Below are positions 2,416 to 52,388 of a DNA stretch of 64,000 nucleotides, one piece after another. The translations under genes and the position numbers were made by a program. The notes beneath the pieces are model-generated. The model ran no database searches. It was not told where the DNA came from and saw only the letters and a program-made list of their open reading frames with translations. This DNA comes from Hyaloraphidium curvatum SAG 235-1 (Eukaryota > Fungi > Monoblepharomycota). Position 1 is the first letter of the stretch. Every line of letters starts with the position of its first letter. The stretch spans positions 62,001 to 126,000 of the forward strand of contig JAIVFI010000044.1 of NCBI GenBank assembly GCA_025558095.1, in the 5' to 3' direction.

Positions 2416-3914
2416 ATGGACAGCGAGCCTGCGGCCGAGACCTGGCTGGCTGCATTTCCAGCGTGGCCTTCTGCGCCGCCGAGCCTCTCCGGCGCGCCGC
2501 CGTTCCCCGACCGTGCGGCGCCGGCGGCGGAAGCGCGACCGCTCACTGCGAGGGCCATGCTGGACGGCCTCGCGCCGTCGCCGGCCCTCCGCGCCGCGAC
2601 ACGCATGCAGCTCGTGCTCGCGCCCCTGGCGGGGGCGGCCATGGCCCGGGCCGCCTTTACTTTTGTCGCGTTCGCCGCCGTGCTGGGCGCGTCGTGGGCG
2701 TTCCCGCACGGGCAGTTTCCGCAGAACAATTTCGTCATCGGCTTCGCCGTGATGCTGGTCTTCACATTTCAGGCTTTGGTGGGGCAGGGTCTCATGGCCA
2801 CGTACCGCGGGTCCCTGAGGCTCCCGACGTCGACGTCAGGTCCGGTGCTCCTGGACAAGCACCCGCTCGCCCCGCTAGTGCGGTGGGCGGAAGCGCAGCG
2901 TGCGGGCCACATGTCGGAGCACGATCCCGTCGACGAGCTGTGTCCCTGCCCGCTGCCGGGCTGCGCCGGGGGGCTCGGTTCTCGCGCCGCGCTTCTGCGC
3001 TGGCTCGAACTGGCCTTCAAGTCCGTCTTCGTGACTTCGGCCATGTTTGTGTGGATCTTCACTCCCATGGTCACGCAGGGGTACGAATTTTGGCGGACCC
3101 CGTGGTCTGCGACGCTTGGGGCGTTGAGCCGTGAGTAAGACAGCCGTACACCGCGCTTGCTTTCTGCTGAACGTCCCATCTTGCAGTCGCTGCGATTCCG
3201 ATATACAGCTTCCCCGTCACTGCCGTGCGCTTCAACGGGAACATCGCCGTGTTCGAGCTTTCGGAACGTATCTCGCACCGGATGATGCGGCTCGCTCTCT
3301 CGGACGTGCTCAGTTCTCTGCGTCACCGCTCCCTATCTGCCATGGAGCACGGGGAACTCCCGGTTCCGGTCGATAAGCCCGGTCCAGGGAATCCGGCCGA
3401 TGCGGACCTCTACGTGGAGCTTCACCGAGCCCTCTCCGCGACATGGCGCTCGCGCGTCTCGCAGACCAACTTCTCCACCGCCCTCGTCGTCTCGGCCCTC
3501 ACCGCGCTTGTCGGCAGCTGCATCGTCATGGTTTCGGGCGGATGCCTGCCCGCCATATATCCCGCCTTTTTGGCCTATTTGGCGCTTGCGCTGGTCCTCG
3601 TGGACCTGCTCAACCTGGCCGCCAGCAACGGACAGGTCAGTTCGGTGCGCGCTCTGTACCACACGGCGCGGCGGGAGCTCCGCGAGCTGCCGGACCCGCC
3701 CGACCCCGAGCTCCGCCGCGCGGCAGCCCGGCACGACGCCCGCCTGCCGGGATATCTCGACGACCCGGGCGTCAGGGGGAAGTTCCTGGGCCTGACGGTG
3801 GACTACGGAGTCGTGAGGACGGTCGTCGTGACCACGATCACTTTGATCGTCGGCATTTGGAGCATGCTGGAGGGGCTCGGAGTCAGGTTGACGATGGACT
3901 TCGCGCGCACCTGA
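2416..3914 (+). CDS. Unnamed 7-TM membrane protein, putative gustatory-receptor-like/7TMIC family, paralogue A (2 exons)
   Basis: Intron 3131-3186 (GTGAGT..TTGCAG) joins two ORFs. Seven hydrophobic segments, an LCPCPLPGC motif and C-terminal KFLGLTVDYGVVRTVVVTTITLIVGIWSML. Homologous to 50424-52388. Confidence 0.8.
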
Positions 3915-4819
3915 GCATGGCGTCGCCGGTGGGAATGTATGCTGATCATCCGACGATTGGAGCTCCGAGTGGTGGCATATGTGGTCGCTACGCGAATGGA
4001 AAGGACCGAGCAGTTCTTTCGTCAAGAACAAACTCAAAGCTGTGCTCCGAGCAGCTCACATCTGCCTCAGCGTCGCGATTTCGTCACCTCCAAATCCCTC
4101 TTCCACGCCCAAGGACTTCCAAAAGTCCACTTGTTCCGGAGAACGCGCGGTCGCGATCGGGAGCTTCTGCGCGGAGCGGCCGCGCTGGAATAGGCGACGC
4201 CCCGCAGCTGCGCGGGATGCCTGCTCGGAGAGGTCACGATTACGACGCCGGCGCAGCAAGCTTGCATTATCGCTCTTCTCGGGAACGGGGGACGGAACCC
4301 TCGCCGTTCTATCGCGGACCTCCTCGCCGACCGCGGTGCCGGTCGGGGCTACGTGCGGAGCCCGCGTCGCAAACCGGATACCCGCCGTGCGCGCAGCGGA
4401 GCCTTTTGAGCAGTTTGTGTGCGCCCCGGCCGCCCGGTCTGCCCGCGGGGCTCCTGCCCGTTGGGGATGTTTTGGCGGCGAGGCGGCAGCATTGGTGCCT
4501 TGGCTTGAGGGTCCGGGCTCCGCAGCCACCGCCCCTCGGCGGCCTTCCGGCGCCGCTGCGTGCAACCGATCCCGCCGCTGCTTTACGGCCGGCACCCGCG
4601 CACTCTCGTATGCAGCGGAGGATGCACCGCGGTGCGCGGCCGGCGGGCACGAATGCCCTGCCGACCGGTCGGCACCTCCGTGGCTGGGGCGCCGACACCG
4701 ACGTCACCTGTCCCCAATCCGGGGCCCTGCGTCCCTTGTTTTCCGCCACCGGCCTGGCAGATCCCAGACAAATGATCTCGGGCCCGAACGAACCCCCATT
4801 TCGCCGGATCGACCTTGCG

Positions 4820-7800
4820 ATGGACGCGCCGGCACCCCCGGCGAATGCGCCGGCGCGCCGCACTGCCCCCCGACGCGGGCGGCCGCGCCTCGCGGCGTCC
4901 CTCATCTGCCTCGCCGCGCTCCTCCTCCTCCTCTCCGCCCGCACCTCCGCGCAGCTCGCCGCGCACGATCGCCCCCCCGCCGTTCGCTCCTCTTCGGCAT
5001 TCGTGCGCGGCGAAACATGGTGGGCGCCGAACGTCCCGGCCGCAGCGCCGCGGCTGACTCGCCCCGCGCGCGCAGCTGCTTCGGATGCTCGTACGGCACG
5101 GGATGCTGCTGCCCCCGCGCGTCCCGCGAGGTCCGCACGAGGACGGTCACCTGGACGGCCGTGGCGACCCGCCGCATCACGCGCACCCACGTGAAGAAGG
5201 TCACGACCATCGTGACGGTGACCGCCCGGCGGTTCTGGGGCCGCAGCACGCCGGTGGTCGTGCGCGGGGCCGCCGGGAGCAGGCCGGAGCGTCCGGGGGA
5301 TGCCGGCACGAACCTGCGGAGGGATCACGGCCGCAACGCCACGGTGCCCCGCCGGCTCGAGGCCAGATCACCACCTCCCGAGCCCTATTCCCCCCTCGAT
5401 GAGCCCATCCGGGAGCCGCATCGCCTCTTTGCCCGGCACCTCTGCCCCGCGTGCCCCTCCGGGATCGTTCCGGCCGCGAACGCGGTGGGAGGCAGCCCTT
5501 GCTGCCCCCGCACGACGGTCTGGAGGACTTCGACCGCCGTGCGCAGGCGGACGACGACGGTGTACACGACCAGGACGCGGAGGGTGACGAGCACGAGCAC
5601 GTTCACGAGCGTCGCCGGCGCGGTGGGTGGCTTTACGTTCCCCGAGGTGACCTTACCTTACTTGATCCTTGATCCCTGATCCCGGACAGACAAACGCCGT
5701 GCAGGGACAGGCGAGGACACTTACCGCCTCCCGCAACCTGTATTTGGATTGACCCGCAGCCGCCCCGCAGATCTGGTACGACGACGACGACGACGGCCTC
5801 TTCGACCCCGCGCACGACCGCCCGCTCGCCGGGCAGGTGGTCTACGTCCTGGAGGTCGACGGCGCCACGGGCCACGCCGTCGCCGTGGCATCCGGGACCA
5901 CGGACGGCCAGGGACACTACGAGCTGCCGGCGCCGCAGATGCCCCCCGGGGTGGTGTGCAGGATCGCGCTCAACGACCCGGGGAACAGGCCACTGGGGAG
6001 CACCTTGGTGGGCGGCGCTCCTTTGCACCGCTGATTCGTCTGATCCGGTGCCGTCAGACCAACTCGTCGGGCAGCTTCAACTCCCTGATCCCGATCCCGC
6101 CCGCCCGCCAGCCGCCCGAGGTGATCGCGATCGCGCACCGCAACGCGTACGGCGTCCGTCTGACTCCGGAACCCCGCAGCTCGCCGTCACCGCCTTCCTC
6201 GATGGCTGCTCCGCGCGCCGCCGCTCGGGCGGCGCCGTCACCGTCGCCGGCACCGGCGCGGCCCCGCGCTGCACGGTGGTGCTCACCTCGTCGGGCGCCC
6301 GGATCGCCGAAACCGCGTCGGACGCCGGCGGCGCGTGGCGGTTCGTCGTTTCCGCGGCGGCGATCCCGGGGATGGGCGGGCGGACGCCGTTCGAGGTGCA
6401 CCAGCTGGACGGGCACGGGCTGGCTTCGGCGCCGGTCGAGGCGGGGTGGGTCCCGGACGCGTTTCCTCGCCCGTGGTGGTTTGCTGACGTCCGTTCGAAG
6501 CGTCGCGAACTGCCCCGTAAGGACCGCGACGGCAACGGCCACGAAGACACCGACCCCGCTGCCCCTGGGCTCCATCTCGGGCCGCGTGTTTGTCGACGCG
6601 ATCGGCAGGCCCGGTGTCGTCGGCGTCGCCATCAAACTCACCGGAACGGCTGCCGACGGAACCGCCGTCATCCTGGCGACGAGCACCTCGGCCGACGGGA
6701 GCTACTCCTTCGCGGACCTGCCGGCCGGGACCTACACCCTGACCGAGAGCGTGCCGGCGGGATACTCGCCTTCGCCCAACTTCCCCAATACTGTGATCAC
6801 ACCCGTCGTGCTCGCTCCCGGTGCATCGTCGACGGAGAACGACTTTGGCCTCGTGCAGCCGATCGCCTCTTCGAGCACCGCCGCGGCTCGTTCGACCTCG
6901 AAAACCAAAACCTTGACGGCAACGACGTCGATCGCGCAGAGCTCGACGGCCTCGCCCACCACCACGGGCCTTCCCCTGGGGACGATCTCGGGCCGCGTGT
7001 TCCTCGACGCCACGGGCAACCCCGGCGTCGCCGGCGTCACCATCCAGCTCGCGGGCACGGCATCGGACGGCAGCGCCATCGGCTTGTCGACCATCACCTC
7101 GGCGGACGGGGGCTATTCCTTCCCGAACCTGCCCGGCGGCACATACGCGATCACGGAGCTCGTGCCCGCGGGCTATTCGCCCTCGCCAAACTTCCCCAAC
7201 ACCGTCGTCGCGCCCGTCGTGCTCGCTCCCGGTGGATCCTCCGCCGGGAACGACTTTGGCCTGGTACAGAGCACATCTTCGAGCACCGCGGCAGCCGCTA
7301 CGTCGACTTGGCAGACCGAGAGCGCGACGGCAACGAGCTCGGAGTCGCAGAGCTGGACGGCGACGACCAGCGAATCTGCTTCGCGGACCGGTACGACCTC
7401 GGAGTCGCGGAGCTTGACCGCGAGCACCTCGGAGACGCAGAGCGAGACCGCGACGGCATCAGAAACCCAGAGCCTGGCGGCCACGAGCAGCGAGACGGCT
7501 TCGGCGACCGCGACGTCACCGGAGTCCCAGACCTTGACGGCCAGCACGTCCGAGACGCAGAGCCGGACGGCCACGACGTCGGAGTCGCAGAGCGTGACGG
7601 CCAGCTCCTCCTCGGAGACGAAGAGCGGGACTGCGACGGCATCGGAAACCCAGAGCCTGACGGCCACGAGCAGCGAGACGGCCTCGGCGACCGCGACGAC
7701 ATCGGAGTCCCAGACCTTGACGGCCAGCACGTCCGAGACGCAGAGCCGGACGGCCACGACGTCGGAGTCGCAGAGCGTGACGGCCAGCTCCTCCTCGGAG

Positions 7801-10800
7801 ACGGCGACGACCAGCGAGAGCGCCTCTGCGAGCGCCACGACTTCCGAATCCCGGAGCGCGACGGCCACGACCAGCGAGACTGCCTCGCCAACCGCGACGA
7901 CCTCGGAATCGCAGAGCTTGACGGTCACGACGCAGGCTACCTCGGTGAGAGGATCGCTTGGGAGCGCGGAAGCAGCCGCTGACGAGCTTGCAGACCCAAC
8001 CATCGACGTCGACGGCCGCCCCGACCACCTCGAGCCTGCCCTCCGGATTGATCTCGGGCCGGGTGTTCCTCGATGCCCCCGGCCAGCCCGGCGTCGCCGG
8101 GGTCACCATCCAGCTCGCGGGCACGGCATCGGACGGCAGCCCCGTGAGCTTGTCCACGACCACCGCGGCGGACGGAAGCTATTCCTTCCCAAACCTTCCG
8201 GCTGGAACCTACACCGTGACTGAAGTCGTGCCCGCGGGCTATTCTCCCTCGCCGAATTTCCCCGAAACCATCATCACCCTGATCGCGATCCCTGCGGGCG
8301 GGGCTTCAACCGCGAACGACTTTGGCTTGGTGCGGACGAGCACCTCTTCGAGCACCGCGGCGGTGGTTCCTTCGACATCAAAAACCAAGAGCCGGACGGC
8401 AACGAGCTCGGAGACGCAGAGCTTGACGGCCACGAAGTCGGAAACGCCGAGCACCAGCTCTTTGACGGCCACGAAGTCGGAGACGCCGAGCAGCAGCTCT
8501 TCGACGGCCACGGAGTCGCAGACGCCCAGCAGCAGTTCTTTGACGGTCACGAAGTCGGAAACGCCGAGCACCAGCTCGTTGACTTCCACGAAGTCGGAGA
8601 CGCCGAGCACTAGCTCTTTGACGGCCACCAAGTCGGAGACGGCCAGCAGCAGCTCTTCGACGGCCACGGAGTCGCAGACGCCCAGCAGCAGCTCTTTGAC
8701 AGCCACGAAGTCGGAAACACCGAGCACCAGCTCTTTGACTTCCACGAAGTCGCAGAGCCGCACTCCTTCGCCGACGTCGAGCAGCACCACGGCCCGCCCC
8801 ACGACGTCGAGCAGCACTCATTCGGCGACGTCGAGCACCCAGGCCGTTCCGAAGACGTCGACGAGCTCGACATCTGCAACTACCACCAAAGTTTGTCTAC
8901 CTGATGCCGCTCTCCCAAACCTCGAGTGACCAGTCTTTGCAGGTTTGCAGCACCGTCACCCCGCTTCCCAGCCCGTCCGGGGGCACCAACGCCTGGAGCG
9001 GCACGGTGACCACTCAGGCGGCGGTTTCGAGCCCCGGCGTCGATTTCCAGTCGAACACCGGCGGCGACGGATGGGATGTCGGGTTTCACGCTGATGGCCA
9101 GAGGGTGTTCAACGTGTTCCACGTCAGTATCGCGCTCCGTGCTCTGGGCTCTCGCTGAGCTGTGCGCTTCGCCTCGCAGCACGACGTTGGCATGACGGTT
9201 GATTGCCACGTAAGTGCGATGTTCTGCAATCACTTGCTCTCCTCGAACTCCTCTGTCCCTTCAGATCAAGAGCACCGGTGACCCCTGCAACGCCCATTAT
9301 CCGTGGAGCGGAACGACAGACGTGCTGACGTCGCAGCAACCCTACCTATTGTTCGACCCGTTGGACCCCAACCTGATGTACATCTGGGGCCTACTCTCCT
9401 TGCAGTCGGGAGCGTCAGCAGCAGCCGTGATCGTGGGTATCAACGTGGGCAGCACCGCTGCAACGGTACCGACCATCACGGGGCTGTACCAAATGTCTCG
9501 CGACGGCTACGGACCTTATCCCGACTTTACCTACGGAAACTACGGCCCGGTGGGAGGGGTCGTGATAGGCATGTGGCCCGTGCGTTCGCTCGGGCAAAGC
9601 CTGACGCCAGGCCACAGGAACGCAGTTCTGGGCCATCAACAACGCTCAGAACTTTGCTCTGGATCACGAAAGGAACGCGATGCTGTGCTTCGACACTTCC
9701 ACCAAGGCTGCTTGTGCTGGGCCCGCCTGGTACCCAGTAAAGTACCCCAACAACTGGATCAGCAATTGGGGTTATACGGCATGGATCTTGGAAGCGAAGG
9801 GACGGATCTACATCTACAGCCCCGGGGAAGCGTCCGGTTTTTGGAAGAATGTGATAACTTGCTTCGATCCCAACTCGGCTGGGACCGCGTACGAATGCGG
9901 CGGGAGCTGGCCGGTCACGGTTCCGTATGAGTGAGTTCGTCTCCCGTCGAGCGAGGGGCAGTCTTCTCAACGATCTCCCAGCACAACACTTGACGAAGAC
10001 ACAAGATCGGCATCGCTCTTCCAGTATCGCCCTTCTGCTTCAGGGGATGCGCAGGGAGTCTGCGTTGGCGGTGCTCAGTATGATGCCATAGCGGGACCCG
10101 CAGGCCGGATCTACTGCTGGCACTTTGATGGCACCAAAATCGGATGTGGGTTCAACCGGAGCTCGACTCGCCAGTTGTGTTGACTCATTGGTTCGGAAGA
10201 TCTGGCCGACATCCACGGCCTCCTGAGCCACACCTCGGTCAGCGGCGCGAACTTTGAAACCACGAAGTACCTTGTGCCTGCCAACGACGGGGTGGCGTGC
10301 ATCGACATGGCCACCAACGCTTCATGCACCGGGTATCCGATAACGGGCCTCACACCAGGCGGGGACATTTCGACCTATACGATCCGCGCGGAATCGCCGA
10401 CGTGTTTCTGGGCGAATAGCGACGCCGGCGACATTTGGAACTTTGACCCTGTCGCGAGAACAAAGGGCTGCGGGAGTAAGCTATACACTTACGGTGGGTT
10501 TCACTTGGGGTGCATCCTGGAGTCACACGAACTCATTGCCTGGCCCGATCTATAGACAGCTTCCACCCTGTCAACCTCGAGAAGCCCTGGTGCACGCAGA
10601 ACATCACGAGCTGGAAGTCGTGGACGCTGATCAAGGTCGGCAACAACCTGGCTTACACCAGCGCGAGCATCGTCTTCTACGACCAGAACCTGGTCCCGAT
10701 CCCGGGCCTCGCCTTCACCATAACGTCGGCGTCGCCCACCGCCAACTTTGGGAGCAACCTGCCGGGGTCGCTGATCCCCGACGGCACGCTGCGCTTCGAG

Positions 10801-10940
10801 ATCAAGTTCACCGGCCTGACGGGGTGCACCGGATGCGCGATCCAGTACTCTGTAGACTGTGCGTACCCGCGCCTTGGACACCGATTCCACCGCTGACCCT
10901 CTCGACAGTTGACTCGACCCCGCAAGTGTGCTGTGGCTGA
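4820..10940 (+). CDS. Large secreted, multi-exon adhesin-like protein: signal/anchor, Cys-rich N-terminus, SdrD-B/prealbumin-like repeats, Ser/Thr mucin repeats, Cys-rich beta-rich C-terminal domain
   Basis: Hydrophobic leader LAASLICLAALLLLLS; three copies of (S/T/L)ISGRVF(V/L)DA..PGV.GV.I.L.GTA.DG...TSADG.YSF.(D/N)LP.GTY...E.VPAGY...NDFGLV; about 15 introns hand-spliced into one frame ending DSTPQVCCG*. Confidence 0.78.
7300..7945 (+). repeat. Coding tandem repeat, about 30-nt unit (TATTSESQSL-like), with a higher-order duplication of about 183 bp
   Basis: Recurring (acg)gccacgac/gagc...tcggag(a/t)cgcagagc; the block at ~7450-7620 recurs almost identically at ~7633-7803. Confidence 0.9.
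8395..8760 (+). repeat. Coding tandem repeat, about 39-nt unit (LTATKSETPSTSS)
   Basis: Repeated ttgacggccacgaagtcgga(a/g)acgccgagca(c/g)cagctct units. Confidence 0.9.
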
Positions 10941-11024
10941 GGTGCACGTTGTTGGGCATTGGGCGAGCGCGGGATGTGCCAATAGAGCAACCACGGTTTC
11001 GCTTCCTGCTCCGCCGCGCGATCT

Positions 11025-11789
11025 TTGTTGCACCAACACCGTCGCGTTGTTCGCCAGACGGCGTGTCGTAAAGAACACGGAGCACACCGTTCGGTCCCAG
11101 ACCTTGTTTCCAACACAAGCCCTATCTATTGGAACGGACACACGGTCTCCACGGTGAAGAATATTCCCGCGCCCCTTAGCATCGCGGGGACCAACTACAG
11201 CGGATCCGACAAGCCCGCCGCCGAGCGCTTCGCGCACTGGACGGCCGGATGCGGTGGCACGATCGCGTTCCTCGAAAACGTGCTGCGCCCGCTGAACATC
11301 CCCGTGCTTGCCCTGTGGAACGACCTGGACGCATGCGCGCACTCGTCCGCCTACTTCCCCACCCTCGACATGTACCTCTCCCACGGGGACGATCCCTACA
11401 CCGCGCACACCATGGGCATCGGGGACTGGTTCGCCCCCGCCGCCGAGCTCTTCACCTCCCGGGCAGACTGGACGTCCTGGTTCAACGTCACGGTGCCGCT
11501 CTCGTGCAAGAACCTCGGCCGAAGACCGCACGAGATCGCGATCGGCACGCCCAGCGTGCCGCTGTGGTACGCGTTCTGCGTCGATCGGCTCGCGGGGGTG
11601 CAGTGGGATTCGCCCGTGGCGGCGAAGGAGGGAAGCTGGGTGGTGAAGGAGTTTGCGCCGTTCGGGTACACCGCAGGGACGCTGCAGGCCAAGGGCGTGT
11701 GGGACAGGTTGGAGGCGGTGAGGGCGGCGTTGGGAGGCTGTCCGCCGGGGTGCGCGGTCAGCCCGTGGTCGGGGTTTCCAATGTGCTGA
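11025..11789 (+). CDS. Hypothetical protein or 5'-truncated gene fragment, possibly transglutaminase-like (Cys-His-Asp)
   Basis: 254-codon open frame with host-like codon usage and HWTAGCGGTIAFLENVLRPLNIP...HSSAYFP...YLSHGDDPY; no in-frame ATG in its 5' part. Confidence 0.5.
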   Translation: MLHQHRRVVRQTACRKEHGAHRSVPDLVSNTSPIYWNGHTVSTVKNIPAPLSIAGTNYSGSDKPAAERFAHWTAGCGGTIAFLENVLRPLNIPVLALWNDLDACAHSSAYFPTLDMYLSHGDDPYTAHTMGIGDWFAPAAELFTSRADWTSWFNVTVPLSCKNLGRRPHEIAIGTPSVPLWYAFCVDRLAGVQWDSPVAAKEGSWVVKEFAPFGYTAGTLQAKGVWDRLEAVRAALGGCPPGCAVSPWSGFPMC

Positions 11790-11866
11790 CGAGACAAGGT
11801 CCGATGCACCGAGTCGAAATGATGGTACACTGCATCGTTTCCGGTGCCGCGATCCAGAACCGTCCG

Positions 11867-12760
11867 TCAAGTTTCCCGCTCGACATTCCCGAATGCGGCC
11901 CAGAGGTCCCTCTCGCGGCGGCCTTCCTCCCCACGCCACGCCTCGCCGTGCGTCAGCGGCGGCCCCGAAAACTCGAACCGCACACGGAGCCCCGGCCGCA
12001 AGCACAGCATCCCGATCGCATCGGCGTGACCAACGGGGAGCGACGGCTGCGCGTTTCGGAGCACCAGCAGGCGCAGACTCGGCGGCAGCCGCGCGCACCA
12101 AAGCTCGCCGGTCGGGATCCTGTCCAGCTGCAGGGTCTCCACGCTGTCCATGGCCGACAGGGAGCTCCAGAACCTGTCCACGTCAGCCTCGGTCATGGGC
12201 GGGATCACCCGCACGGGGAACCAGATGAAGCGCAGCTCCTTCAATCGCAGCCCCTGCATCGCGAGCAGCCCGGGGAACGTGTCCAGCTGCGCCACCGCCA
12301 AAACGAGCTTGGCCCCGAGGGCGGGCGGGGCACGGTCCCAAGGGAACCCTTTGTTGAGGCACCGCACCGCGCGGACGGCGGGAGCTGCCGCCAGCGCCTC
12401 GAAGATGCGCGAGGTGCCGACGACGGTGACCTCCACGTCCCGCATGCGCAAAAGCATGCTCTCCAGGTCGTCCGCGGCAGAAAGATGCACACCGGCCAGC
12501 ATCAAGTGGCGCACGAAGCGCAGGTTCGGCGACTCCCCCGCCGCCGAAAAGAAGCGCCCGAACGGAACAGGGCGTTCGAAGGGCGGGAACGCGGAGTCGC
12601 CGAGGCACACCGTGCGGAAGAGTGCGGGCATCACAGCATCGAGGCCCGCGGAGCTGGCTTGCGCGAGGGAGGCGAGCGTGCGGAGGAGGCCGGCGCGGGA
12701 GAGGTGTTCGGCGACCAGGGCGAGGAGCTCCTCGGGCAGGTCCGGCGGTTCGGGCACCAT
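11867..12760 (-). CDS. F-box-like protein with LRR-like C-terminus (intronless; alternative start at 12835)
   Basis: N-terminal PDLPEELLALVAEHL...TLASLAQAS...MPALFRTV, followed by LxxLxL-type segments. Confidence 0.65.
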   Translation of the reverse strand: MVPEPPDLPEELLALVAEHLSRAGLLRTLASLAQASSAGLDAVMPALFRTVCLGDSAFPPFERPVPFGRFFSAAGESPNLRFVRHLMLAGVHLSAADDLESMLLRMRDVEVTVVGTSRIFEALAAAPAVRAVRCLNKGFPWDRAPPALGAKLVLAVAQLDTFPGLLAMQGLRLKELRFIWFPVRVIPPMTEADVDRFWSSLSAMDSVETLQLDRIPTGELWCARLPPSLRLLVLRNAQPSLPVGHADAIGMLCLRPGLRVRFEFSGPPLTHGEAWRGEEGRRERDLWAAFGNVERET

Positions 12761-12887
12761 CAACGACGAATGAAGATAGGTGCGACTGTCCGGGTCGCTC
12801 CCGGCAAAGCTAGCTCCGGGTGCGGCCGTGGCCATGTTGGACGACGGCTGGCCTGCCGAACTCCGTGTCTCCCGCGGCGAGCAAAGG

Positions 12888-13445
12888 ATGCCTGCCCACC
12901 TAATCTACATCATGGGCACTACCGCCTGCGGCAAAACCACCGTCGCCTCCGCGCTCCCGCCGCTCCTGGCCTCCCTCTCGCCCCCGGTGCGCGCGTCGTG
13001 CGTCGACGCGGACGCGCTCCACCCCCGCGCCAACGTCGAGAAAATGAGCCGCGGCGAGCCGTTGGACGACGACGACAGGTGGCCGTGGCTGGAGGCCGTG
13101 GCGACCGAGGCGGTGAAGGAGGCTGGAAAGGACGGGGCGGCCGTGGTCGCGTGTTCCGCGCTGAAACGGAAATACCGGGCGGTCCTGGCCCGGAATGACC
13201 CCGGAAGCGCCGTCGAGACGACGTTCGTGCATCTCCGCGCGTCGCCTGAAGTCATACGGACGCGAATCGCGGCCCGGAAGGGGCACTTCATGAACCCGGC
13301 TTTGGTGGACTCCCAGTTTGCTGCCCTCGAGCAACCACAGTTGGGCGAGGGCCCCTACGGCGTCATTGTCGTGGACGTGGACGACAAACCGGAGGACGAG
13401 GTGCTGCGGGAGGTGCTCGAAAAGCTGGAACCGAGGCTCCGGTAG
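12888..13445 (+). CDS. Gluconokinase (GntK/IdnK type)
   Basis: IYIMGTTACGKTT P-loop, DADALHPRANVEKMSRGEPLDDDDRWPWL, VVACSALKRKYR, RKGHFMNPALVDSQFAALE. Confidence 0.93.
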   Translation: MPAHLIYIMGTTACGKTTVASALPPLLASLSPPVRASCVDADALHPRANVEKMSRGEPLDDDDRWPWLEAVATEAVKEAGKDGAAVVACSALKRKYRAVLARNDPGSAVETTFVHLRASPEVIRTRIAARKGHFMNPALVDSQFAALEQPQLGEGPYGVIVVDVDDKPEDEVLREVLEKLEPRLR

Positions 13446-13451
13446 CCTCTA

Positions 13452-15040
13452 TCATTGTGTCTTCTGGTCGAGGACACGCAGCATGTACTCGCAGGCTGCC
13501 ACCAACCCGGCCTCCACCTCCTCCCCGCTCGGCACGATCTCGGACGGCGGGAGGAGGAAGCCGCGCTCGCCTCTGTCGCGGAGCTCGACGCCGAACGCGA
13601 AGTCGGCCCCGACGGAGCGGGCAAAGTCGACCGAGGAGCCCGGTGCGGGGTAGATGGTCTGGCACACGGGCCCGTGCCCGAAGCTGTACGGTCATCGGCA
13701 TGTCAGCTGCAATCGACCGGCGTCCGCAGCGCAGGCATCGCACCTCTTCCCGTGCACCTTCTCCAGCGCCTCCACCGCCGCCTCCGCCGCCCCGGCGAGC
13801 GCCCTGCCTTCCGGCGACCGATCCTCCTCGCACGTCCACGCGGGCGGGTACATCCAGAGCTGCGAGAAGGCGTGAAAGTCGGCGTAGCCCGCCAGCGGCG
13901 CCGTCGAGTTGGAGAGGGATGTGAGGAGCGAGGCGATGGCGCGGGATTCGGGGGCCGAGAAGGCCTTGGGGCCGCCGCTGGTCGGGTCGGACGTCAGCCT
14001 TCTTGCGCCGTCCGGCGGGACGGCAGACCCACTAGTTCTCGGCGCAAGGGTTGGAGGAGGAAGACCACTTGTATCCCCAGTTGCGGTTGGTGTCGGTTCC
14101 GTCGCAGCCAAAGCCGGGGAACGGCGACTTGTTGGGCTGCCTGTTCTTGCGCCACTGCGCACCGGAGTCGTCGGCAAACCGAGTGGCGCACGCCCACGAC
14201 AGATCCCACCATCCGGTCCTTGGTCCAGGAATAAATGTAGCCGTCGACGTTCATGACGGGAATGACGTGGAACTCGAACCGGTCCAGCAGCGCCGCCAGC
14301 GGCCCCTCCCCCGAAAGCAGCCGGTCCGCGAGGTAGGTCGCGACCGCCGCCGATATCCACTCCCGGGCATGCTGTGCGCCGTGGAACACGAACGAGTACT
14401 TCCGGGGGTGGGGATGGTCCGAAGTCGAGTTGCCGTGCGGCCGCGCGATCTTGAGGCCGAGGATGTCCCGCCCCTCGTGGGTCTTGCCGGCGGTGAACAC
14501 CGATGCGATTTCGGGGTGCTCCTCGGCGGCCTTCATGACAAAGTCTTTGAGCTCGTCGGCCGTGTGGTACTTGCTAAAGAACCCGTCGCGGCCGGCTTGA
14601 GCAGAAAGCTCTTGTTCCTCCCGGATGAGCTGGTCAACATCTTCGTGCACGACCCGGGATCCGGAAAACCGGCGCTCCAGTCTGGGCCAGTGACGGGCAA
14701 ATGCGCCGGGGTTGAGCCGCACCAGCGCCGTAGCGCAGCCGCCGTCCCGAGCGAACGACCACAGATCTGCCCCGGGGATCGCCTCCAAGACGGTCAGGAG
14801 GTCCTCTTTCCTGTCGGCATGCCGAAAAGACGCGTTGTCGGCCCGCTGGAGAGCGATCGGAGCTTCTTTGCCAGGGCAATCGACGAGGCGGACCACGCCG
14901 TGACCGCCATACGAGACGGGGCCCGAAGACACAAGGAAAGACCGGAGATCCAAAACGGAGGGCTCCCAGAAGGAAAACAACGCAATGCAAGCAATCAGGA
15001 GCCCCAAGGCCGAGAAAACCACACGCGCCGCGTCTGGCAT
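13452..15040 (-). CDS. Secreted zinc carboxypeptidase, family M14A, with prodomain
   Basis: Signal/anchor; HAREWI zinc ligands, WRKNR, DINRNW, DFHAFSQ, TIYPAPGSSVDF and FGVELRD (catalytic Glu intact); at least 3 introns. Confidence 0.92.
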
Positions 15041-15129
15041 CGCGGCGAACTAAAGACAGTGCGCACAGAGCAGCTTCTGAGACGTGTCATCGAAGCAGCA
15101 TCAACCAGTCTTGTCGCGCCGGGAACACG

Positions 15130-16668: not shown

Positions 16669-16941
16669 CAGGCTTCACGTGTATCGATTGAAGTGACCCT
16701 TCAGCCCTCCCTTTACATCATGGCGTGCAACACTCTTCGTCTTCCTCCCACGGACAAATGTCGTAGTCACCGTCCTCGTCGTCCGAAGACGGCTCACGAG
16801 ATTTGCGATTCTGGATCTCCAGCTCGAGGCGCAGGTTGGCGATGTGTTGGCTCCCTCGCCTTACAAAAGACGAAAATTCCGACTTTTTTTTTTCCTGCTT
16901 TCTCTCCTCTTCACTTCTCGCCGACTTGCGACCCGCCCCAA

Positions 16942-39882: not shown

Positions 39883-40027
39883 TGTTTACGCCAAGCGTCG
39901 CAGTGGTCCTAGCAGCGGATGCCAAAAGTGAGGCGGCCCAATCTAAAGCCGTTGCCACTTCATTCAGGACCCTCGTTGATCTACAAGAACTAAGGGCCCA
40001 AGCAAGGCAAAGCTCTACTCCACAGCA

Positions 40028-43516
<3,489 letters not shown>

Positions 43517-43665
43517 GGCGGCTACCCTTGTTGAGGCTCGACGCGATCGCGTGGCACATACGATCGCGCCGGAAATACAACTGTCTCCCGGCCCGCTTCG
43601 CTTCCGTTCCGCCAGCGCAACCTCAGCCATCGAGCTCCGCGCCGCAGACGTCGCACGAAGTCGCG

Positions 43666-44651
43666 ATGCCCGGCCACATCGCCTCGGATCGGGACCACAT
43701 GCTCGAGTTCGCCCGGCATGCCGCGGAGGTCTCCAAAGCGAAAAGCGCCGGCCACGTTTCCCTCTCCCACGGCGTGGAAGGCAACTGGGCTGCCGCTCCG
43801 TATTTCATGACGAACAGCTTCATGACGACGCGTCCGCTGTCGAACGACCAGTTTGCCCAAGCCTGCGCTGAGGTCACGGCGGACGCCGCCAAGCGCCAAG
43901 AGGCTCTGGGCTCCGCCTTCCGGGCGCGCTGGTTGTTCCAGGTCTTCGAGGGCGACCTGCAGGACGCCGACGCTGCCGTCGAGATCGCCATGAAGAACGG
44001 GCTGGCGCTCACCTCGCGCTCGCGGATCATGGCGACGGACGTCTCGCTGCTCGTCCCGCCCGCGCATCCGGCGCCGGAGATGGAGCGCCGTAGGATAGTG
44101 ACCGAGGCCGATGCGGCGGAGGCGGTCGCGCTCAACTACGCCGCGTACGGAGCTCCCGCAGCCCCCCGGGATGCCGAGCTCACCGCGGCGTCCGGGATGT
44201 ATCGCTCGTCGCCAACGACCGACTTTGGCTGGCTGGCTGTCGTCGACGGGAAGCCCGTGGCCACGTGCCAGTGAGCTGCACCTCGAGCGTACATGTTCCA
44301 CAGCCGATCTTACGCCCATTTCCCAGAATCCTCGTCCAGGACGGGTGGCTTTATGTGACCGAGGTGGCCACCGACCCCTCCCCTGCCCACCGCGGCAAAG
44401 GCTACGCCGAGCACCTCCTCCGCCACGCCCTGCTTACCGCCCGCGCCGAGACCGGCCTCACCCGCACCGCCTTGGATGCCTCGCAGCCGGGTGCGCCGAT
44501 CTACGCGCGCATGGGGTACGCGTTCACGGGGGGGTGCTGGATGGCGTTCGTCGCCGCGAGGAGCGAGAAGGGGAGGGAGGCGACGCGGAAAGATGAGGTG
44601 CAGGCCGAGGAGGAGTACAGGAAGCGGATGAAGAGGATTGGGAGACTTTGA
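43666..44651 (+). CDS. GNAT-family acetyltransferase, 2 exons
   Basis: LYVTEVATDPSPAHRGKGYA (motif A), LDASQPGAPIYARMGY. Confidence 0.85.
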
Positions 44652-44741
44652 TCGCGCGCCGGCGGCGAGTTCTTCGCGAGATAGGGTGTGGCCCCCTGCT
44701 ACGTTTCCATTTTCGCTCGACAATACACATCTTTCGAGTAC

Positions 44742-45576
44742 TCATAGGCGGTACTCGGTGTCCGGCGGGATCGGGAATTCGTCGACATTCAAGCACATTG
44801 ACACCCAGCTGATGTGAGATGATCAGTACCCGATGCGGGCCACTCCGCGGATGCTCACGTGTAGTAGCTCATGACCCCCATGAGCTCCACCGCCCCCCTC
44901 TCGCCGAGCAGCTCCCTGACCTTGAGCCACGTCGCCTGGTCCACCCTCTTCCTCTCCGAATGGTAGAGCTGCCTGCAGAACGCGTAGATGGCGTTCTGGT
45001 CAGCGGTCATGGCTGCCACGGGCGGCGGCAGGTTCTTGCGGATGGCGTCACATCCCTCCTTGGACAGGCCGGCGTGGATCGCAGGGAGCTCGTGGGCATA
45101 CCATTCGAAGTCCGAGTTGAAGAAGCGGGCGGTGACTAGGATGCCGATCTTGGGAAGGAGGGTGAGGGGACGGCTTGCGGGACGGAGGAGGAACGCACCT
45201 CCTTTGCCATGGGCGGGACCTCGCTCTTGAGGTTGAAGAACTGCAGCATGTCGACCATGACCTTGTTCATCCCCGGAGTGCGGTGCCACGGGTTGCTCGG
45301 CCCGACGCGGAGCACCCTGTCGCCCAGGGCGTTCGCCAGCTCCTTCTGGTCCTCGGCCAGGCTGTCGTCCTCCGCGGGCGTCAGCGCAGGGAACCGCTTT
45401 CCCTCCGCGCGACGCCCATTGGGGCCCTTGTCCATGAAGAACGGGATCTTGGTGAGATCCCCGAGGATGCCGAAGAACTCGGTGTTGTACTTGGCCAGCT
45501 CGGCCTCGGTGGGCTTGAGCTTGGGCGCGGGGAGGTTGGCACGGTACTCCTTGCTCCAGGCAGATTCGGAGCCCAT
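44742..45576 (-). CDS. Carboxymuconolactone decarboxylase/AhpD-like family protein, 3 exons
   Basis: KEIGILVTARFFNSDFEWYAHE.PA..AGL, VDQATW..VRELLGERGAVELMGVMSYYT|WVSMCLNV. Confidence 0.8.
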
Positions 45577-45892
45577 CGTGGCGTTTCCTCAATGGAATGA
45601 AGGTCCTTGGTGGACGAAGATTCGCCTTCTGCCCTCGCGAGAGGACAAAGATGTGCCCGGAATCGGAGGGGAGACAGACGCGGGGGAACAAACGCCGGCG
45701 ACAATCTCCCGACGCGAGTCCTCCCGGCAGCGCAGGCAACGAGCGCGAAAGAACGCGTTCGATCTCCCTTTAGGCAAAGAGAGAGCCTGAAGAGACCGGC
45801 GGGCGCTCGAGACTATTGGCGGAGAGACCCTTTGCCACGCGCGCGTTCCTTTCGTCGTCCCGCCGACGGCAAAGTGCGGATCCAAACACGCG

Positions 45893-47337
45893 ATGGCCCA
45901 CGAAACAGGCGTCCAGGGCGCACAGGGCGGGGCGTCCGCCGATCTCGGAGTGCCCGGCGTCAGCGGCCACGGTGAGGCACGGCCCTTTCCCGCCCGGAGA
46001 GCCCTCTGACGCGGGATCCGGGTAAACAAGTCTACACGACCTCGTCGAGCCTTCCCTTCTCGGTGGAGAAGGAATGGTACCTGTGCTACGCCGACAGCTG
46101 CACCGTGGACGACCTTTTCGTCGGGATGATCGACAAGGTGGCCCCCGCCGCGGCCTCTGGAACGTTCGGGCGGGCTGACGGGATCGCGGACAGGTCGGGC
46201 AGTGCGTGACCCCCCTGACGACCATGCTGGGCCTCAAGCCGACCCCAAGTACGTTGTCCGTCCTTCGCTGTCGGCGATGTCCCGCGCTGAGTCGGATTCC
46301 CACAGTGATGGTCACGCGGGATTTCCGACTCCAGCTCCACCCGTCCATGGTCGCGCAGGGCTCCAAGACCATGATACCGGGAGCGGGCGACCACCTCTGG
46401 TTCCGCATGTACATGCTTGACGTCAGTAAGGCCTACATCAAGTGCGAGTTTGAGTTCCGGTTGGTCGGGGACCTGGACTGGGCCAAGTTGGTTTCCCGCG
46501 GGCAGTCGCTCGCGGCCCGATGACTGATTGCCCTCCCTTTCCAGGTGGGCAGAGAGAGACATTGCCGGCGGGAGGGCCAGCTGGGGCTCCGGCGTCGACC
46601 GCCGGCCAGGGATTCCCGTCGCCGCCGGCGTCGTCGGCTACGTGAGCATCCTTTTCGTCGTCAATGTTTGCCAGCTTCTCATATCCTCCCAGATGGTCGT
46701 CGTCCGGGATCCCAAAACCCACCGCCTCCGCGCCGCCCCCCCGGACCTCCTCCCCGTCGCCGAGTGGACCCGCCGCGGCATCTTCCACAGCTCCATCCTC
46801 GCGGGCGACATGCTGGACGGGGAGCAGGCGTACAAGTGGCTGCTGCACAGCACCGAGGCGGACGGGTTCGCGGCGGAGGAGGTGGTGCCGGGAGACAGGT
46901 GGGAGGCGCTCCCAGAGTACGAGTGGAGATCGCGGAGGACGGACAACGACAGTTTGGGGCACACGACGGTGCACCGGTGGGATTCGTTATCTGTGGTGCG
47001 GATCGGTTCTGATTCCTCGCTGCCAGCCGGGTGCTGCCCTTTTTCGACGCCTGCTACGCGCTCCTGCCGAAACAGCGGGTCGCCGGCATGTGGTTCGAGT
47101 GCGTTTCGCCCCCGCTTCCTGTCCGAACTCGGCTGACGGCGCCCTGCCAGGTGCAAGACCGAGATCCTCCCGGACCAGGACTGCACCATCCGCGGCGTCC
47201 ACATCCCCGGCGCCGACGGCCGCGCGCGCTTCCTCCTCGACAACGGCGGCGGCCCTGGCCGGCTGAACCGGTGCGGCGTCTGGCTCGTGGACCGGGCGAG
47301 GGTGCGGCTCAAGAGCGCGGGGGGCGGGCCGGCGTGA
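45893..47337 (+). CDS. Multi-exon hypothetical protein, possibly a double hot-dog thioesterase-like fold
   Basis: Exons with host codon usage; WRSRRTDNDSLGHT resembles the RxxDxDxxGH hot-dog motif. Exon structure only partly resolved. Confidence 0.45.
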
Positions 47338-47440
47338 GGCGGTTGGACAGGCATCAGCAATCAGAATAGACTACATTTCGCGACTCGTTCCGCGACGACT
47401 CCACTTGCGCCGATCGGCATCCAATTTTCGCACCCTTGGA

Positions 47441-49608
47441 TCACGGGCTCAGCAGCGCCTTCGGGGGCACCTGCACCCGCGGCGACTCGGGCACCTCCTC
47501 CTCCTCCTTGACCCCCTCCACGGCGACCTCCCCCTTTTCCAGCAGGTCGTCTTGGCTCCGATCGGTTTGGAGCGGGTGCATCGCCTTCCAACGCTTCTGG
47601 AAGTGGAACGGCCCGTTCGGCCCGCAGTATTGCGGGTACCGCCACTCGATGAAGTAGGTGATGCAGAGCATGACGCTGCGTTTGCCAAACGTGGGAACAA
47701 TCAGCCCACCGATGCATCCGCGGAACGCGCGGAGGGAAACCCACATCACCGCCCCGCACATGGCCGCGCTCACGGCGAACGCCTGCTGGTATAGCGGCGC
47801 GTCCTGCTGCCTGTACAGCTGCGGCCCGATGATGCTGCCGAACTGCCCGAACATGATGGGGATGGAGGAGGCGAGGGCGGTGTAGGTGGTCCCGTAGATG
47901 GTGTCGGTGCGCCTGCAATCCCGGGTTTCAGTCCGCTGCTGCTTCCAAGACGTGGAGCCGAAACCCACCACGCCATGGTGATCGGTGCCAGTGGCGAGAT
48001 GCCCGTCAGCCCGAGGAACAACAGGAACAGCTTCACGCCGGGCAACCCGGGCCCGATGACGGAGAACACGGTGTAGGCGACCATTGGGAAGCACACGATG
48101 GCGACGAGGTGGAAGAACCGGTCGTGGAAGCGGTCCGACGACCAACCCCAGAACAGGAGGGTGATGACGCCCCATGTGCCCAGCGGGGCGCTCATGGCGA
48201 TGGCCTTGGTAGAGGTGAAGCCGAGGTTGGTCAGGATGATGGGCTGCCGAATCGCGGTCAGTTTGGAAGCCTTGGCAGGCGTGGAGACAACCCACGTAGT
48301 AAGCCACCAGCCCCGACGTCACCGCCCCCGAAAACAGCTTCGCAATAGCAAAGGTGTACGTGAACGGGTTCCTCGCCGCGTCCTTGACTTGCGCCCACAC
48401 CCACGTCCTCCCCCTCGGATCCGAAACGCTGTCCCCCTGCAGCCTCCACTCCATGAACTGCCTCTCCGTCCTTGTCATCCACCCCCTGCACGTGTGCGGG
48501 TAGTCGGGCAGGCACGTCCACGAGCCGATGCCGATGAGGATGGAGAACAGGCCCTCGAGGAGGAAGAGCCACTGCCATCCGTACAGGCCGCCGATCCCGT
48601 TCATCTGGATGATGCCCGTGGCGAGCAGGCCGCCGATGATGGTTGCCACGGAGCCCGCGACGAAGAAGCCGGCGACCCGGCGGCCGCGCTCGGAGCGCTT
48701 GTACCAGAACTGGAAGGGGACGGGGTGCGGTGAGGCGAGGTGATCAATCGGGTGCCAGCGAGGCAACCCACGGTGAAGTAGTACAGCACGCCCGGGATCA
48801 GCCCCGCCTCGCACACGCCGAGGAAGAACCGCGTCGCCAGCAGCCCCCCGTAGTTGGTGATGGCCGCCATGCACGCGAAGACGATCCCCCAGGAGACGCA
48901 GATGCGCGCGAGCCATTTCGAGGGGCTGGCCCACTTGAGCACGATGTTGCTGGGGATTTCGAAGATGATGTAGCCGAAGAGGAAGATGGATTGGGCCCTG
49001 GAGGGGGGAGGCGGGTCGGTCAGATCCTGGGTAGACTACCCGTGAAGGTGGTTGTGATTACCAGTTGTATTGGTCTGCCAGCGGGGGTCAGTCAGGTGTT
49101 CCGTCCGCAAGCACAAGGCACAAAATGCCCACCGGTGGTCAGGTTCAGCGTCTGCAGCAGCGAGTTGCCGCTCTCGCGGTTGGCCACTGCGGCGAACGAG
49201 AGGGCCGAGCGGTCGAAGGTGTTGACCAGGAAGAGGAAGAACACGGCGGGCATGATCCGCCAGTCGGCGCGCCGCACGAGGGCCCTCTCGATCTTGGCCA
49301 GCTCCCTGCGAAGCCGTGCGGGAGAGGATCGGCGATCAGCGTCGGGCGGTGCGGGCTTCGCAGGGGACCCACTCGGGGGCCGCCCCCGCCAGCTCGGCGG
49401 GCAGCGCGACCTTGCCGTCGGCGTCCTTCGGGTACGACTCGTCGGGCTCGTCGGTGCGGCCGCCGACGATGCGGCGCCACGTCCAGCGCGCGGGCGCCGG
49501 TGCGGGCTCCGCAGGAGGGTTGTACGGCGGCGGCGGCGAGGGCGTTTCAGCGCGCGCGGGGGCAGCGCCCGCCGCGGCGGCCTTCACGTCGGCGACGCCG
49601 GGCTCCAT
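47441..49608 (-). CDS. MFS transporter, anion:cation symporter (Dal5/Tna1) family
   Basis: RRADWRIMP, FDRS.L, DQYNWAQSIFLFGYIIFEIPSN, RFFLGVCEAG..PG, WYKRSE, GWQWLFLLEG, LPDYP, IIGPQLY. Confidence 0.92.
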
Positions 49609-50423
49609 TGGCGCGGCACGCGGACGATTGGCGGCGGCGGATGGGGTGTTCCTGGACGAAGGCAGCGGATGGCTGATCGATCCGCGGCCTCAGCCCCGTC
49701 GAGCGTCTGGGCCGACGATCGTCTGACGTGACGTCGAATCAGCCGGACGGAGGGCCCTTCGCCGGCACTACTGTGGTGCTCCACAGCGTGTGGGAATGGG
49801 GCGAATGCTTCCGCAACGGCCGCCGGTGCCTATGCGCCCTGCCGGGACAGCGGGGGGCGAGGGCGCCTGGCCGCACCCGGGCGGGATCCGGCCGCTTCGG
49901 CCAAAATGGAGAGGTTGGGCAGCACCCATGCTATGGATTTGGGCAAAATCGCGCGGGACAGTGGTCTCCGACGGGCAGCGACCGTTCTTCGAAGATGGTC
50001 TCCAAGTGGGTCCGTCCCTTCCGCCGCTCCCGCGCGCAGGGGGTCCGGTCCGGCTCGGTCCGGCCCGGGCAGTCAACCGAATGACACCCTGAGCTAGATC
50101 AATGCGTTGAGAGTTGTCGTTGCTTGAATCGCGACGGGGAAAGCGGATTTTGGAAGATTCCTATGGAAAGCGGTCTGGAGCGGTCCAAAGTGACGTATCC
50201 GTCTCCCCACTCCAAGCGATCTGCACCCGATCCGCACGATTCACCCATGAACGTGACCGGCTGCCAATGTCCGCAATCAGACGCACCCCGGCGGAAGGTT
50301 ACCTCCGCTTCCCACGTTCGGCACTACGTTTCACGTTTCTGCTCCCTAGCCAACCAGCCACCTCTGCGGAGGTGCGGGCGCCTCACATCACTCGTCGGGC
50401 TCCGCAGCGCCGCTTCCCCCGCG

Positions 50424-52388
50424 ATGACCACAATGCGGCGCGCGCCGCCGCGCGCGCTTGACTTCTCCCCCGCCGAATGGGTCACCGTCTTCCCCGCGCC
50501 GTCGCCGGGCGTCGCCGTGTTCCCGTCGACGAAAGCCGATGCCGCGCCGCCCGACCCGGGCGCCGACCTGCGCAGGGCCGAGCCGCTGTCGCGCGCCAAC
50601 CTGCTGCGCGAGGCGCGGCGGTCGGGCTCCGGGCTGCTGTACGGCATGACGCGCCTGAACTTTTTCCTGAGCCCGTGGGCAAACAAGGTGCAGCTGCGCG
50701 TGCTGGGCTTCCACGTCTTCAACTTCGCCCTGCTCGCATTCGTGTGGGCGGTCAATGCGGCCGGCGGCAACCGGTACGGCACCCGGCAGCTGATAGCAGG
50801 TGGGTTGCCCCGACCGCCCCAGCTAAAGGTCGGCTGACCCCTTCCACCATTGTTTCCAGCCCTGATCAGCGCGGTCCTGGAGCTCCTCGGCCTCGTCCTC
50901 CTGCCCTTCCTCTTCTTCGGCCGCCTCCGCCAGCGCTTCAAGAAGCTCGGCTCGGGGGTCAACAACGTCCTGGACCAGCACTCGCTCGCCGGCTTCTGTC
51001 GGTGGCAGCAGCTCGTGCGCCGCGATAGCTTGTCGGAGATCCTGGTCGACGTGGATCTCGAGAAGGCGGGCGCGGCGGCCGGGCCCAAGTCCGACGCGGG
51101 CGCCGAGGAGGCCTCGGAACCGGTCCGAGACAGCGCATCCACCGCCGCGGACTCGGAGTCGTCCTCCGAACCCGCCTCCATGCCCCGCGAGCGGCACTCC
51201 TCCTCCTCCCGCACCGACGCCCCCTCCCACATTGATGACTCCCCCCCACTCGGCGTCTCCCCGCTCGACACCGCCCCCCGCAAGGCGGTCGACCTCCCCC
51301 CCACGGAGCCCTCGAAGCTCATCGAGCACCACAAGGGCGACTCCCTGTGCCCGTGCGCGCAGGACGGGTGCATGGGTCGCATCGGGCACCGGTACGCCAA
51401 CCTGAGGCTGTTCCAGATGTTCGTCACCCTGCCGACGCTCATCATGCGGAACCTGTTCCACTTTTACGCGGCGTTCGTGACCTTTGGGTACATCTTCTGG
51501 GGGCGGTGGTGGGGCGTGCTGCTCGGCATCGTGGCCAGTGGGTTGCTGCGTGCCGGGAGCACGCACGTTTGATCTCACCCGTCCGCCGTCCAGTCTTCGC
51601 CGTCCTGAACGACAACGTACCCACCATCCTCGGCCTCGTGCAGTGGACCAACGTCCGCCTCCTCGGCCTCTCCCGGCGGGTGCACCGCCGCGCCATGCTG
51701 CTCGCGCTCGACAGCTTCCTCGCGCGGTGCAAGCACGAGCTGCTCGCGTGCGACGGGGACGGCGACGGCGCGCATGCGATGCAGCCGGCGGAGCTGTACG
51801 TGCGGCTGCACGAGGAGCTGCTGGCGACCTGGAAGAGGGTGCTGCCGCCGCTGTCCATCATGGTGTCCAACTGGGTGCTGCAGCTGAGCGTGCTGCTGGC
51901 GGTGATCATCATCAACATCGTGGGTTCCCGTGCCGCGGTTGCGCGGGCCGTTGCCTGACCTTTGGCGCATCCAGACGATGGGCTCGTGCGTCCCGGCGTA
52001 CTGCTTCTTCACCGTCGCCAACTCCCTCATCCTCATTACCACGCACCTCGTCGACCAGTCCGTCGCCAACTCCCAGATCTCCGACATCACGGATCTGTAC
52101 CTGGACGCGCGCCGCGAGGTGCGCGGCATGGTCGTCCGCGGCGAATCGCTCCCCCGCACCGTTGCGCGGGACCGCCTCCTCGCGCGGCTGAGGGCGCACG
52201 AGAACCTGCTGGGCTCGTTCCTCGAGGTGCACCTGTACAAGAGCCGGCTGCTGGGGTTCGAGATCAACTTCACCTTCACCCGCAACTTCCTCGTCACCCT
52301 GTTCACCCTGACGATCGGCCTGTGGACGCTGCTGAGGGGGAGCAACATCCACGTGGTGCTGGAGAACGTGTGCCCGCCGATTGCGTAG
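50424..52388 (+). CDS. Unnamed 7-TM membrane protein, putative gustatory-receptor-like/7TMIC family, paralogue B (4 exons)
   Basis: Introns 50800-50859, 51538-51593, 51920-51974; LCPCAQDGC motif; C-terminal RLLGFEINFTFTRNFLVTLFTLTIGLWTLL. Homologous to 2416-3914. Confidence 0.82.

Follow-up and report, generated by a model that had tools for sequence, protein, structure and literature searches.

The odorant receptors (ORs) of insects and their gustatory receptors (GRs), including Orco, MhOR5, AgamOR28, AaegOR10, BmGr9, Gr43a and Gr64a, are tetrameric ligand-gated cation channels. Butterwick et al. 2018 reportedly described a hairpin of ~15 residues between S7a and S7b of Orco. In this protein, the seventh transmembrane helix (TM7) is split into TM7a and TM7b (PMC9998090). 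Outside animals, the seven-transmembrane-domain ion channels (7TMICs), to which these receptors belong, are single or low copy in the literature searched (PMC7746228; 10.1101/2023.08.30.555482), with a single gene per species in two Spizellomyces chytrids, 1-6 genes in protists and 4-12 in plants (PMC7746228). Here, we analysed a window of 64,000 nucleotides (contig JAIVFI010000044.1, positions 62,001 to 126,000 of the forward strand) from Hyaloraphidium curvatum SAG 235-1, of the lineage Monoblepharomycota, Hyaloraphidiomycetes. H. curvatum is a non-flagellate planktonic fungus. Two genes of the window, hereafter referred to as A and B, are rather probably divergent members, either expressed or constrained, of a 7TMIC-fold family of the Hyaloraphidium lineage that is very large and would act as a channel-type sensing repertoire.

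The window is eukaryotic DNA with a GC content of 66% and short introns, and genes A and B are the only members of the family found in it. Gene A encodes 480 amino acids and has 1 intron, and gene B encodes 597 amino acids and has 3 introns. All introns are of the GT..AG type, with lengths of 55-60 nucleotides (nt), and both spliced frames are uninterrupted. The features are listed below, where TM, IL and EL denote transmembrane helices, intracellular loops and extracellular loops, respectively.

2416..3130, plus strand: gene A exon 1, residues 1-238 plus 1 nt, with the W..FP motif, TM1, TM2, IL1, TM3 and the start of TM4; based on the open frame and the splice model; 79% identical to the C41 paralogue, with a ratio of non-synonymous to synonymous substitution rates (dN/dS) of 0.19.
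2920..2964, plus strand: gene A IL1 motif HDPVDELCPCPLPGC (H-x3-D-x2-CPC-x4-C), which may be a metal or redox site on the cytoplasmic side.
3131..3186, plus strand: gene A intron, 56 nt, GT..AG, phase 1, within TM4; its position is common to gene B and other paralogues.
3187..3914, plus strand: gene A exon 2, residues 239-480, with the remainder of TM4, a cytoplasmic extension, TM5, EL3, the long TM6, TM7a, a β-hairpin, TM7b and the C-terminal tail.
3804..3875, plus strand: gene A TM7b, putative pore-lining helix YGVVRTVVVTTITLIVGIWSMLEG, the most conserved helix of the family (2.56 bits per column), with invariant R and T.
50424..50799, plus strand: gene B exon 1, with the W..FP motif and TM1; a short separate contig of run X1 spans 50300-50487.
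50800..50859, plus strand: gene B intron 1, 60 nt, absent from the RNA-type contig, in which the joint is given 3 nt leftward, an equivalent cut.
50860..51537, plus strand: gene B exon 2, with TM2, a long acidic and Ser-rich IL1, the CPC motif (51327-51371), TM3 and the start of TM4.
51538..51593, plus strand: gene B intron 2, 56 nt, phase 1, the positional homologue of the gene A intron.
51594..51919, plus strand: gene B exon 3, with TM4, a cytoplasmic extension and TM5.
51920..51974, plus strand: gene B intron 3, 55 nt.
51975..52388, plus strand: gene B exon 4, with EL3 (GSCVP), TM6, TM7a, the hairpin, TM7b (52269-52340) and a C-terminal tail with a conserved Cys (NVCPPIA).

The start of gene A at 2416 is favoured by the family alignments, yet it is uncertain because another ATG of the same frame lies 159 nt further upstream, at 2257 (open reading frame 2257-3138). 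The protein encoded by gene B is larger because its IL1 is longer. This loop has an inserted segment of ~130 residues relative to gene A (window 51040-51330), which is acidic, Ser/Pro-rich and probably disordered, and which is absent from gene A and from most paralogues. A lone weak tblastn match of one family protein to the minus strand (8527-8745, E 6e-5) was considered as a third copy and was set aside, being most likely a compositional chance match.

In the sequence-only reading of this window, genes A and B were described as paralogues that are colinear in their motifs, without obvious DNA similarity, and that share a phase-1 intron of 56 nt at the same aligned codon. This description was borne out. 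The two proteins aligned by blastp with 28% identity over 320 residues (E 2e-36), a second, weaker, colinear match was found in the N-terminal region (E 1e-4), and every motif listed in that reading is present in both translations. No colinear DNA similarity was found between the genes: megablast gave 0 matches, and blastn gave one short antisense GC-rich chance match. In both spliced models the shared intron is located inside TM4, 8 residues past a W..W motif (FWRTPWSATLGALS^L in gene A, FWGRWWGVLLGIVA^I in gene B), while the two intron sequences are unrelated (20/56 bases identical). The same position and phase are found in at least three other paralogues, L033, L035 and L038, to which the count was restricted, L002, L032, L034 and L037 having been excluded because their introns were mis-placed by the crude finder used. 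As this intron is common to A, B and other members, and the majority of family members are intronless, it is best read as ancestral and repeatedly lost.

Gene B is transcribed and spliced, since this gene is found, with its three introns spliced out exactly as in the model, in a contig of 1,620 nt from a public run. The RNA label of that run is a guess, and the evidence is the spliced form itself. Gene A is under purifying selection, judging from the dN/dS values of 0.13 (exon 2) and 0.19 (exon 1) obtained with its closest paralogue, on C41, to which it is about 80-86% identical.

The features that define 7TMICs were taken from PMC7746228 and PMC9998090. The hydropathy profiles of A, of B and of the family average each show seven hydrophobic segments, arranged as three pairs (1-2, 3-4 and 5-6) and a terminal segment. 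In 22 paralogues, the number of Lys and Arg residues is 0.2, 0.4, 0.0 and 0.6 in loops 1-2, 3-4, 5-6 and the C-terminal tail, respectively, versus 2.0-4.8 for the N-terminus and the three long loops, counted there within 15 residues of the membrane. According to the positive-inside rule, this distribution indicates that the N-terminus is inside and the C-terminus outside, which is the inverse of the topology of G-protein-coupled receptors (GPCRs). The mean lengths of IL1, IL2 and IL3 are 77, 76 and 65 residues, versus 4, 17 and 4 residues for EL1, EL2 and EL3. Inner loops that exceed the outer ones and a length of about 350-500 residues are the 7TMIC pattern, to which A conforms with its 480 residues; the 597 of B are due to its longer IL1.

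Database searches and folding were run on single exons or on intronless paralogues, while the joined translations of A and B served for pairwise alignment and the mapping of coordinates. The intronless paralogue P0001 (L003:667-2178), which shares 40.6% identity with gene A along its entire length, was folded with AlphaFold2 as a stand-in for the family. The model, based on alignment A1, has a mean predicted local distance difference test score (pLDDT) of 86.5 and a predicted TM-score (pTM) of 0.85. Its secondary structure, assigned with DSSP, comprises helices [268-288] and [295-321], [335-353] and [358-378], [383-427], [434-450], a β-hairpin and helix [467-490]. TM4 runs on as the cytoplasmic helix [295-321], and TM5 opens with the cytoplasmic helix [335-353]. 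TM6 is a single helix of 45 residues, [383-427]. TM7 is split into a cytoplasmic TM7a [434-450] and a membrane helix TM7b [467-490], which are separated by the short β-hairpin. The model of gene A exon 2, obtained with an alignment of 124 sequences, has a pLDDT of 89.2 and a pTM of 0.82 and the same order of helices, although this half-protein on its own is not diagnostic of the fold. The helices of both models match the hydropathy segments. The long TM4-TM6 and the split TM7 of 7TMICs are therefore found in the predicted models by DSSP.

In an exhaustive structural search, all OR, GR and Orco representatives, and only they, ranked at the top with 300-344 colinear residues aligned, and below them the aligned length dropped sharply to unrelated rows. 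Foldseek also placed GR/OR structures first in the Protein Data Bank (PDB), but with E values of 0.05-0.1 and TM-scores of 0.3-0.42, which are non-significant alone. The fold of the insect GR/OR type that had been proposed from the sequence alone, together with the pairing of the hydrophobic segments, is thus supported by the seven segments, the N-in charge bias, the split TM7 and the exhaustive search; in the comparison with GR/OR structures the ranking held, but the Foldseek significance did not. The best shape matches in the ESM Atlas are cnidarian and echinoderm proteins of ~400 residues without Pfam names (TM-scores 0.56/0.68). Cnidarians and echinoderms possess GR-like genes, of which the matched clusters may be examples. 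Among protein language-model look-alikes, which serve as leads only, TMEM39 comes first (0.90), followed by DUF3537 (0.86) and by 7tm_7, GUR and SRR clusters (0.81-0.82). A four-copy prediction of gene A exon 2, in which the alignment was not used, scored 0.03 and counts neither for nor against tetramers.

Conservation within the family peaks in TM7b (2.56 bits per column), in EL3, in the IL1 motif and in the C-terminal tail, and it is lowest in TM1-TM4 (1.1-1.4 bits). Insect ORs and GRs show the same pattern of a conserved pore helix and variable ligand-pocket helices. TM7b has invariant R and T residues and, on one of its faces, a Thr/Gly/Ser stripe (T472, T476, T479, G483 and S486 in P0001), while TM6 has an invariant Asp and an invariant Asn. 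The N-terminal W..FP motif is family-specific and confidently modelled. In the IL1 motif H-x3-D-x2-C-P-C-x4-C, the H, the D and the three C do not vary among 22 paralogues, and their conservation in 124 sequences is at least 90%. A probable role of this cluster is to bind a metal (for example Zn) or to sense the redox state, as suggested by the location of its His and three Cys on the reducing membrane side. The EL3 motif G-x-C-x-P and the C-terminal Cys fall in segments [380-382] and [494-496], each of which forms a short strand in the P0001 model. The two Cys probably form an outer disulfide, the pairing of the strands being a guess.

Some points weigh against a channel-type sensing repertoire of this kind. 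A non-flagellate planktonic lifestyle gives no evident need for a receptor repertoire so large. No match to 7tm_6, 7tm_7, Trehalose_recp, DUF3537 or PHTF was found in Pfam at E<=10 with the six exon translations and 22 paralogues, all their Pfam matches being due to chance, and the family profile gave no relevant match, and no solved receptor, among PDB sequences. Furthermore, the TM7 motif (T/S)Yhhhhh(Q/K/E)(F/L/M) is kept in at best one position: by its location in TM7b, only the invariant Thr (T479 of P0001, in TLIVGVWSI) could correspond, and the Y and the Q/K/E are missing. This motif has been described as diagnostic, not definitive (PMC7746228). The 3' introns of animal Gr, GRL and Or genes were not seen in A or B; gene A has its one intron in TM4, and the introns of gene B are located after TM1, in TM4 and at the TM5/EL3 boundary. 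Because the structural and topological features of 7TMICs are predicted, but the profile matches and the 3' introns of animal Gr/GRL and Or and of plant DUF3537 are absent and the TM7 motif is reduced to one position at best, we file these proteins as a new family within the 7TMIC fold rather than as members of GR, OR or DUF3537.

Genes A and B belong to a much larger set. A search of the 32-Mb H. curvatum genome with gene A exon 2 found at least 155 matching places, which is a lower bound because only 150 of 561 first-look candidates were scored. All matches listed have E values below about 1e-17. The copies are spread over nearly all contigs, are 25-45% identical in protein and mostly have long, intact frames. 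A few copies have in-frame stops and may be pseudogenes. Close pairs are frequent (C41:327542/331497, C26:548784/550812 and C6:172066/173857), and many copies, also those at C12:710357/714708/731488 and C23:78028/78948, lie within a few kb of one another. Some of these neighbours are on opposite strands, which points to local duplication of both the tandem and the inverted kind.

The family profile (alignment A1, from 22 intronless paralogues) was also searched against 1.84 billion cluster representatives, and it found 458 proteins at an E cut-off of 1e-3, 403 at 1e-10 and 281 at 1e-30, mostly 480-540 residues long. In an evenly spaced sample of the listed matches, 9 of 10 are "hypothetical proteins" of H. 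curvatum. Two further samples, skewed to unusual composition, gave 15 of 20 from H. curvatum, the remainder coming from metagenomes or other assemblies. A word-indexed homologue search gave five H. curvatum proteins when one protein was the query, and the profile gave these five again. The current annotation of family members is hypothetical protein only, without a Pfam domain. With at least 155 genomic places and 458 clusters at E<=1e-3, the large, lineage-expanded family anticipated from just two copies is confirmed, and its size is of the order of 300-400 genes in the Hyaloraphidium lineage.

One further member is found on a 48-kb Logan contig of SRR26194948 (L031, ~55% GC), at 10001-11569. 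The neighbouring genes on this contig are 65-80% identical to those of H. curvatum contig C35, versus ~30% at most between the family member and any H. curvatum copy; it retains the H..D..CPC....C motif and the C-terminal Cys. By this comparison, the source is probably a relative with a repertoire of its own, and the family is diverging much faster than housekeeping genes.

The similarity of the H. curvatum family to insect ORs and GRs is in the predicted fold. There is no detectable sequence similarity, and the TM7 motif is retained at no more than one position. The family, which is of a fungal lineage, also differs from these receptors in a much longer IL1 with the H/D/CPC/C cluster, in the W..FP motif and in the conserved Cys of EL3 and of the C-terminal tail. 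Two chytrid proteins from Spizellomyces, SpunGRL1 and SpalGRL1 (Benton et al. 2020, PMC7746228), likewise come from early-diverging fungi and are 7TMIC-like in length, seven TM helices, N-in topology and long inner loops, with one position of the TM7 motif kept. However, they are single genes in each species and were found by BLAST to animal GRLs, whereas the H. curvatum genes number in the hundreds and lack such similarity, as far as a comparison by description goes. Plant DUF3537 proteins (PF12056) are also non-animal 7TMICs, whose intracellular loops are longer and whose TM7 motif cannot be recognised (PMC7746228), and their cluster is the best 7TMIC look-alike of the family in the language-model comparison (0.86). 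In contrast to the H. curvatum family, they have 4-12 members and a long IL3; the latter family has no Pfam DUF3537 match, and its long, motif-bearing loop is IL1. PHTF-like (Class-B) 7TMICs are conserved and single or low copy, and none of the H. curvatum family members searched matches PHTF in Pfam.

That the family proteins are subunits of 7TMIC-type channels is the best-supported reading, and by analogy we infer a channel and chemosensory function. The subunits would assemble as tetramers, with contacts between subunits in the cytoplasmic anchor and a pore lined by the highly conserved TM7b with its Thr/Gly/Ser stripe. Ligand pockets would be formed by the fast-evolving membrane helices TM1-TM4 together with TM6, and ligand binding would open the channel. 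The family may then constitute a repertoire for sensing chemicals or the environment, which evolves through tandem duplication followed by divergence.

A different function within the same fold has to be weighed against this. The proteins could be true 7TMIC homologues that act as channels or scaffolds for some other purpose, be it in internal membranes, which has been proposed for PHTF-type proteins, in self/non-self recognition or in defence, and the expansion would then be a conflict-driven diversification. All the evidence on fold and topology applies to such a role too, PHTF-like Class-B 7TMICs also have a long IL1 (10.1101/2023.08.30.555482), most non-animal 7TMICs have no known function (PMC7746228), and the conserved cytoplasmic His/Asp/Cys cluster suggests control from the cell interior. 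However, 7TMICs with housekeeping roles, PHTF among them, have one or few copies (PMC9998090), while H. curvatum has hundreds of divergent, constrained paralogues that vary in TM1-TM4 and conserve the pore helix. Variable membrane helices combined with a conserved pore helix are the pattern of a receptor repertoire. We regard a non-chemosensory role as unlikely.

The remaining explanations concern the fold and the nature of the copies. A convergent or artefactual likeness to insect receptors, in a novel and unrelated seven-helix family of transporters, enzymes or TMEM39-like proteins of the endoplasmic reticulum, is improbable: against it speak a ranking in which OR, GR and Orco stand alone above a cliff in aligned length, the coincidence of N-in topology, long TM4-TM6, the TM7a/hairpin/TM7b arrangement and short outer loops, and the recurrence of DUF3537, 7tm_7, GUR and SRR clusters among the language-model look-alikes, and none of the six exon translations and 22 paralogues matches Pfam Tmp39 at E<=10. 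Fungal-type GPCRs, which are N-out, would also have seven hydrophobic segments, but neither their topology nor the GPCR helix bundle was found, and we rejected this identity as very improbable. A high copy number on nearly all contigs, with in-frame stops in a few copies, might suggest the cargo of a repeat or transposable element, or mostly pseudogenes. To this we give almost no weight, as the copies are 25-45% identical in protein with mostly long, intact frames, gene B is spliced and transcribed, dN/dS is 0.13-0.19, and A and B have no common DNA-level repeat.

A channel-type sensing repertoire, which we therefore continue to favour, would have wider implications. We propose, with slightly less than even confidence, that a 7TMIC channel repertoire on the scale of a receptor family arose independently, through birth-and-death duplication, in Hyaloraphidium and at least one relative that is uncultured. 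Comprising several hundred genes in 32 Mb of genome, it would be larger than any other known outside animals, in a fungus that is not known to be motile, and it would have its own metal- or redox-sensing His/Asp/Cys3 module in IL1. A limited literature search found no paper on this H. curvatum family or on a receptor expansion in Hyaloraphidium, and in the literature searched repertoires of several hundred are so far known from animals only. Large repertoires are seen as a hallmark of chemosensation in insects and other animals, and a fungal genome with hundreds of constrained, transcribed and fast-diverging genes of the 7TMIC fold would alter this picture. Should the members be ligand-gated channels, large insect-type repertoires of chemoreceptors would not be an invention of animals, and H. 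curvatum would be a simple system for the study of the ancestral gating mechanism. The independent expansion could be used to compare channel diversification, and its many intronless genes could be expressed heterologously. What a planktonic fungus might be sensing is a further question that it raises. In the conserved H/D/CPC/C loop, the family offers a candidate regulatory feature that is new and can be tested.

A small difference can be noticed at the C-terminus of gene A (window 3900-3911), which reads ...MDFART and lacks the Cys kept in at least 90% of the family, while the C41 paralogue reads ...MDFACT. If the C-terminal Cys pairs with that of EL3, gene A would carry an unpaired outer Cys.

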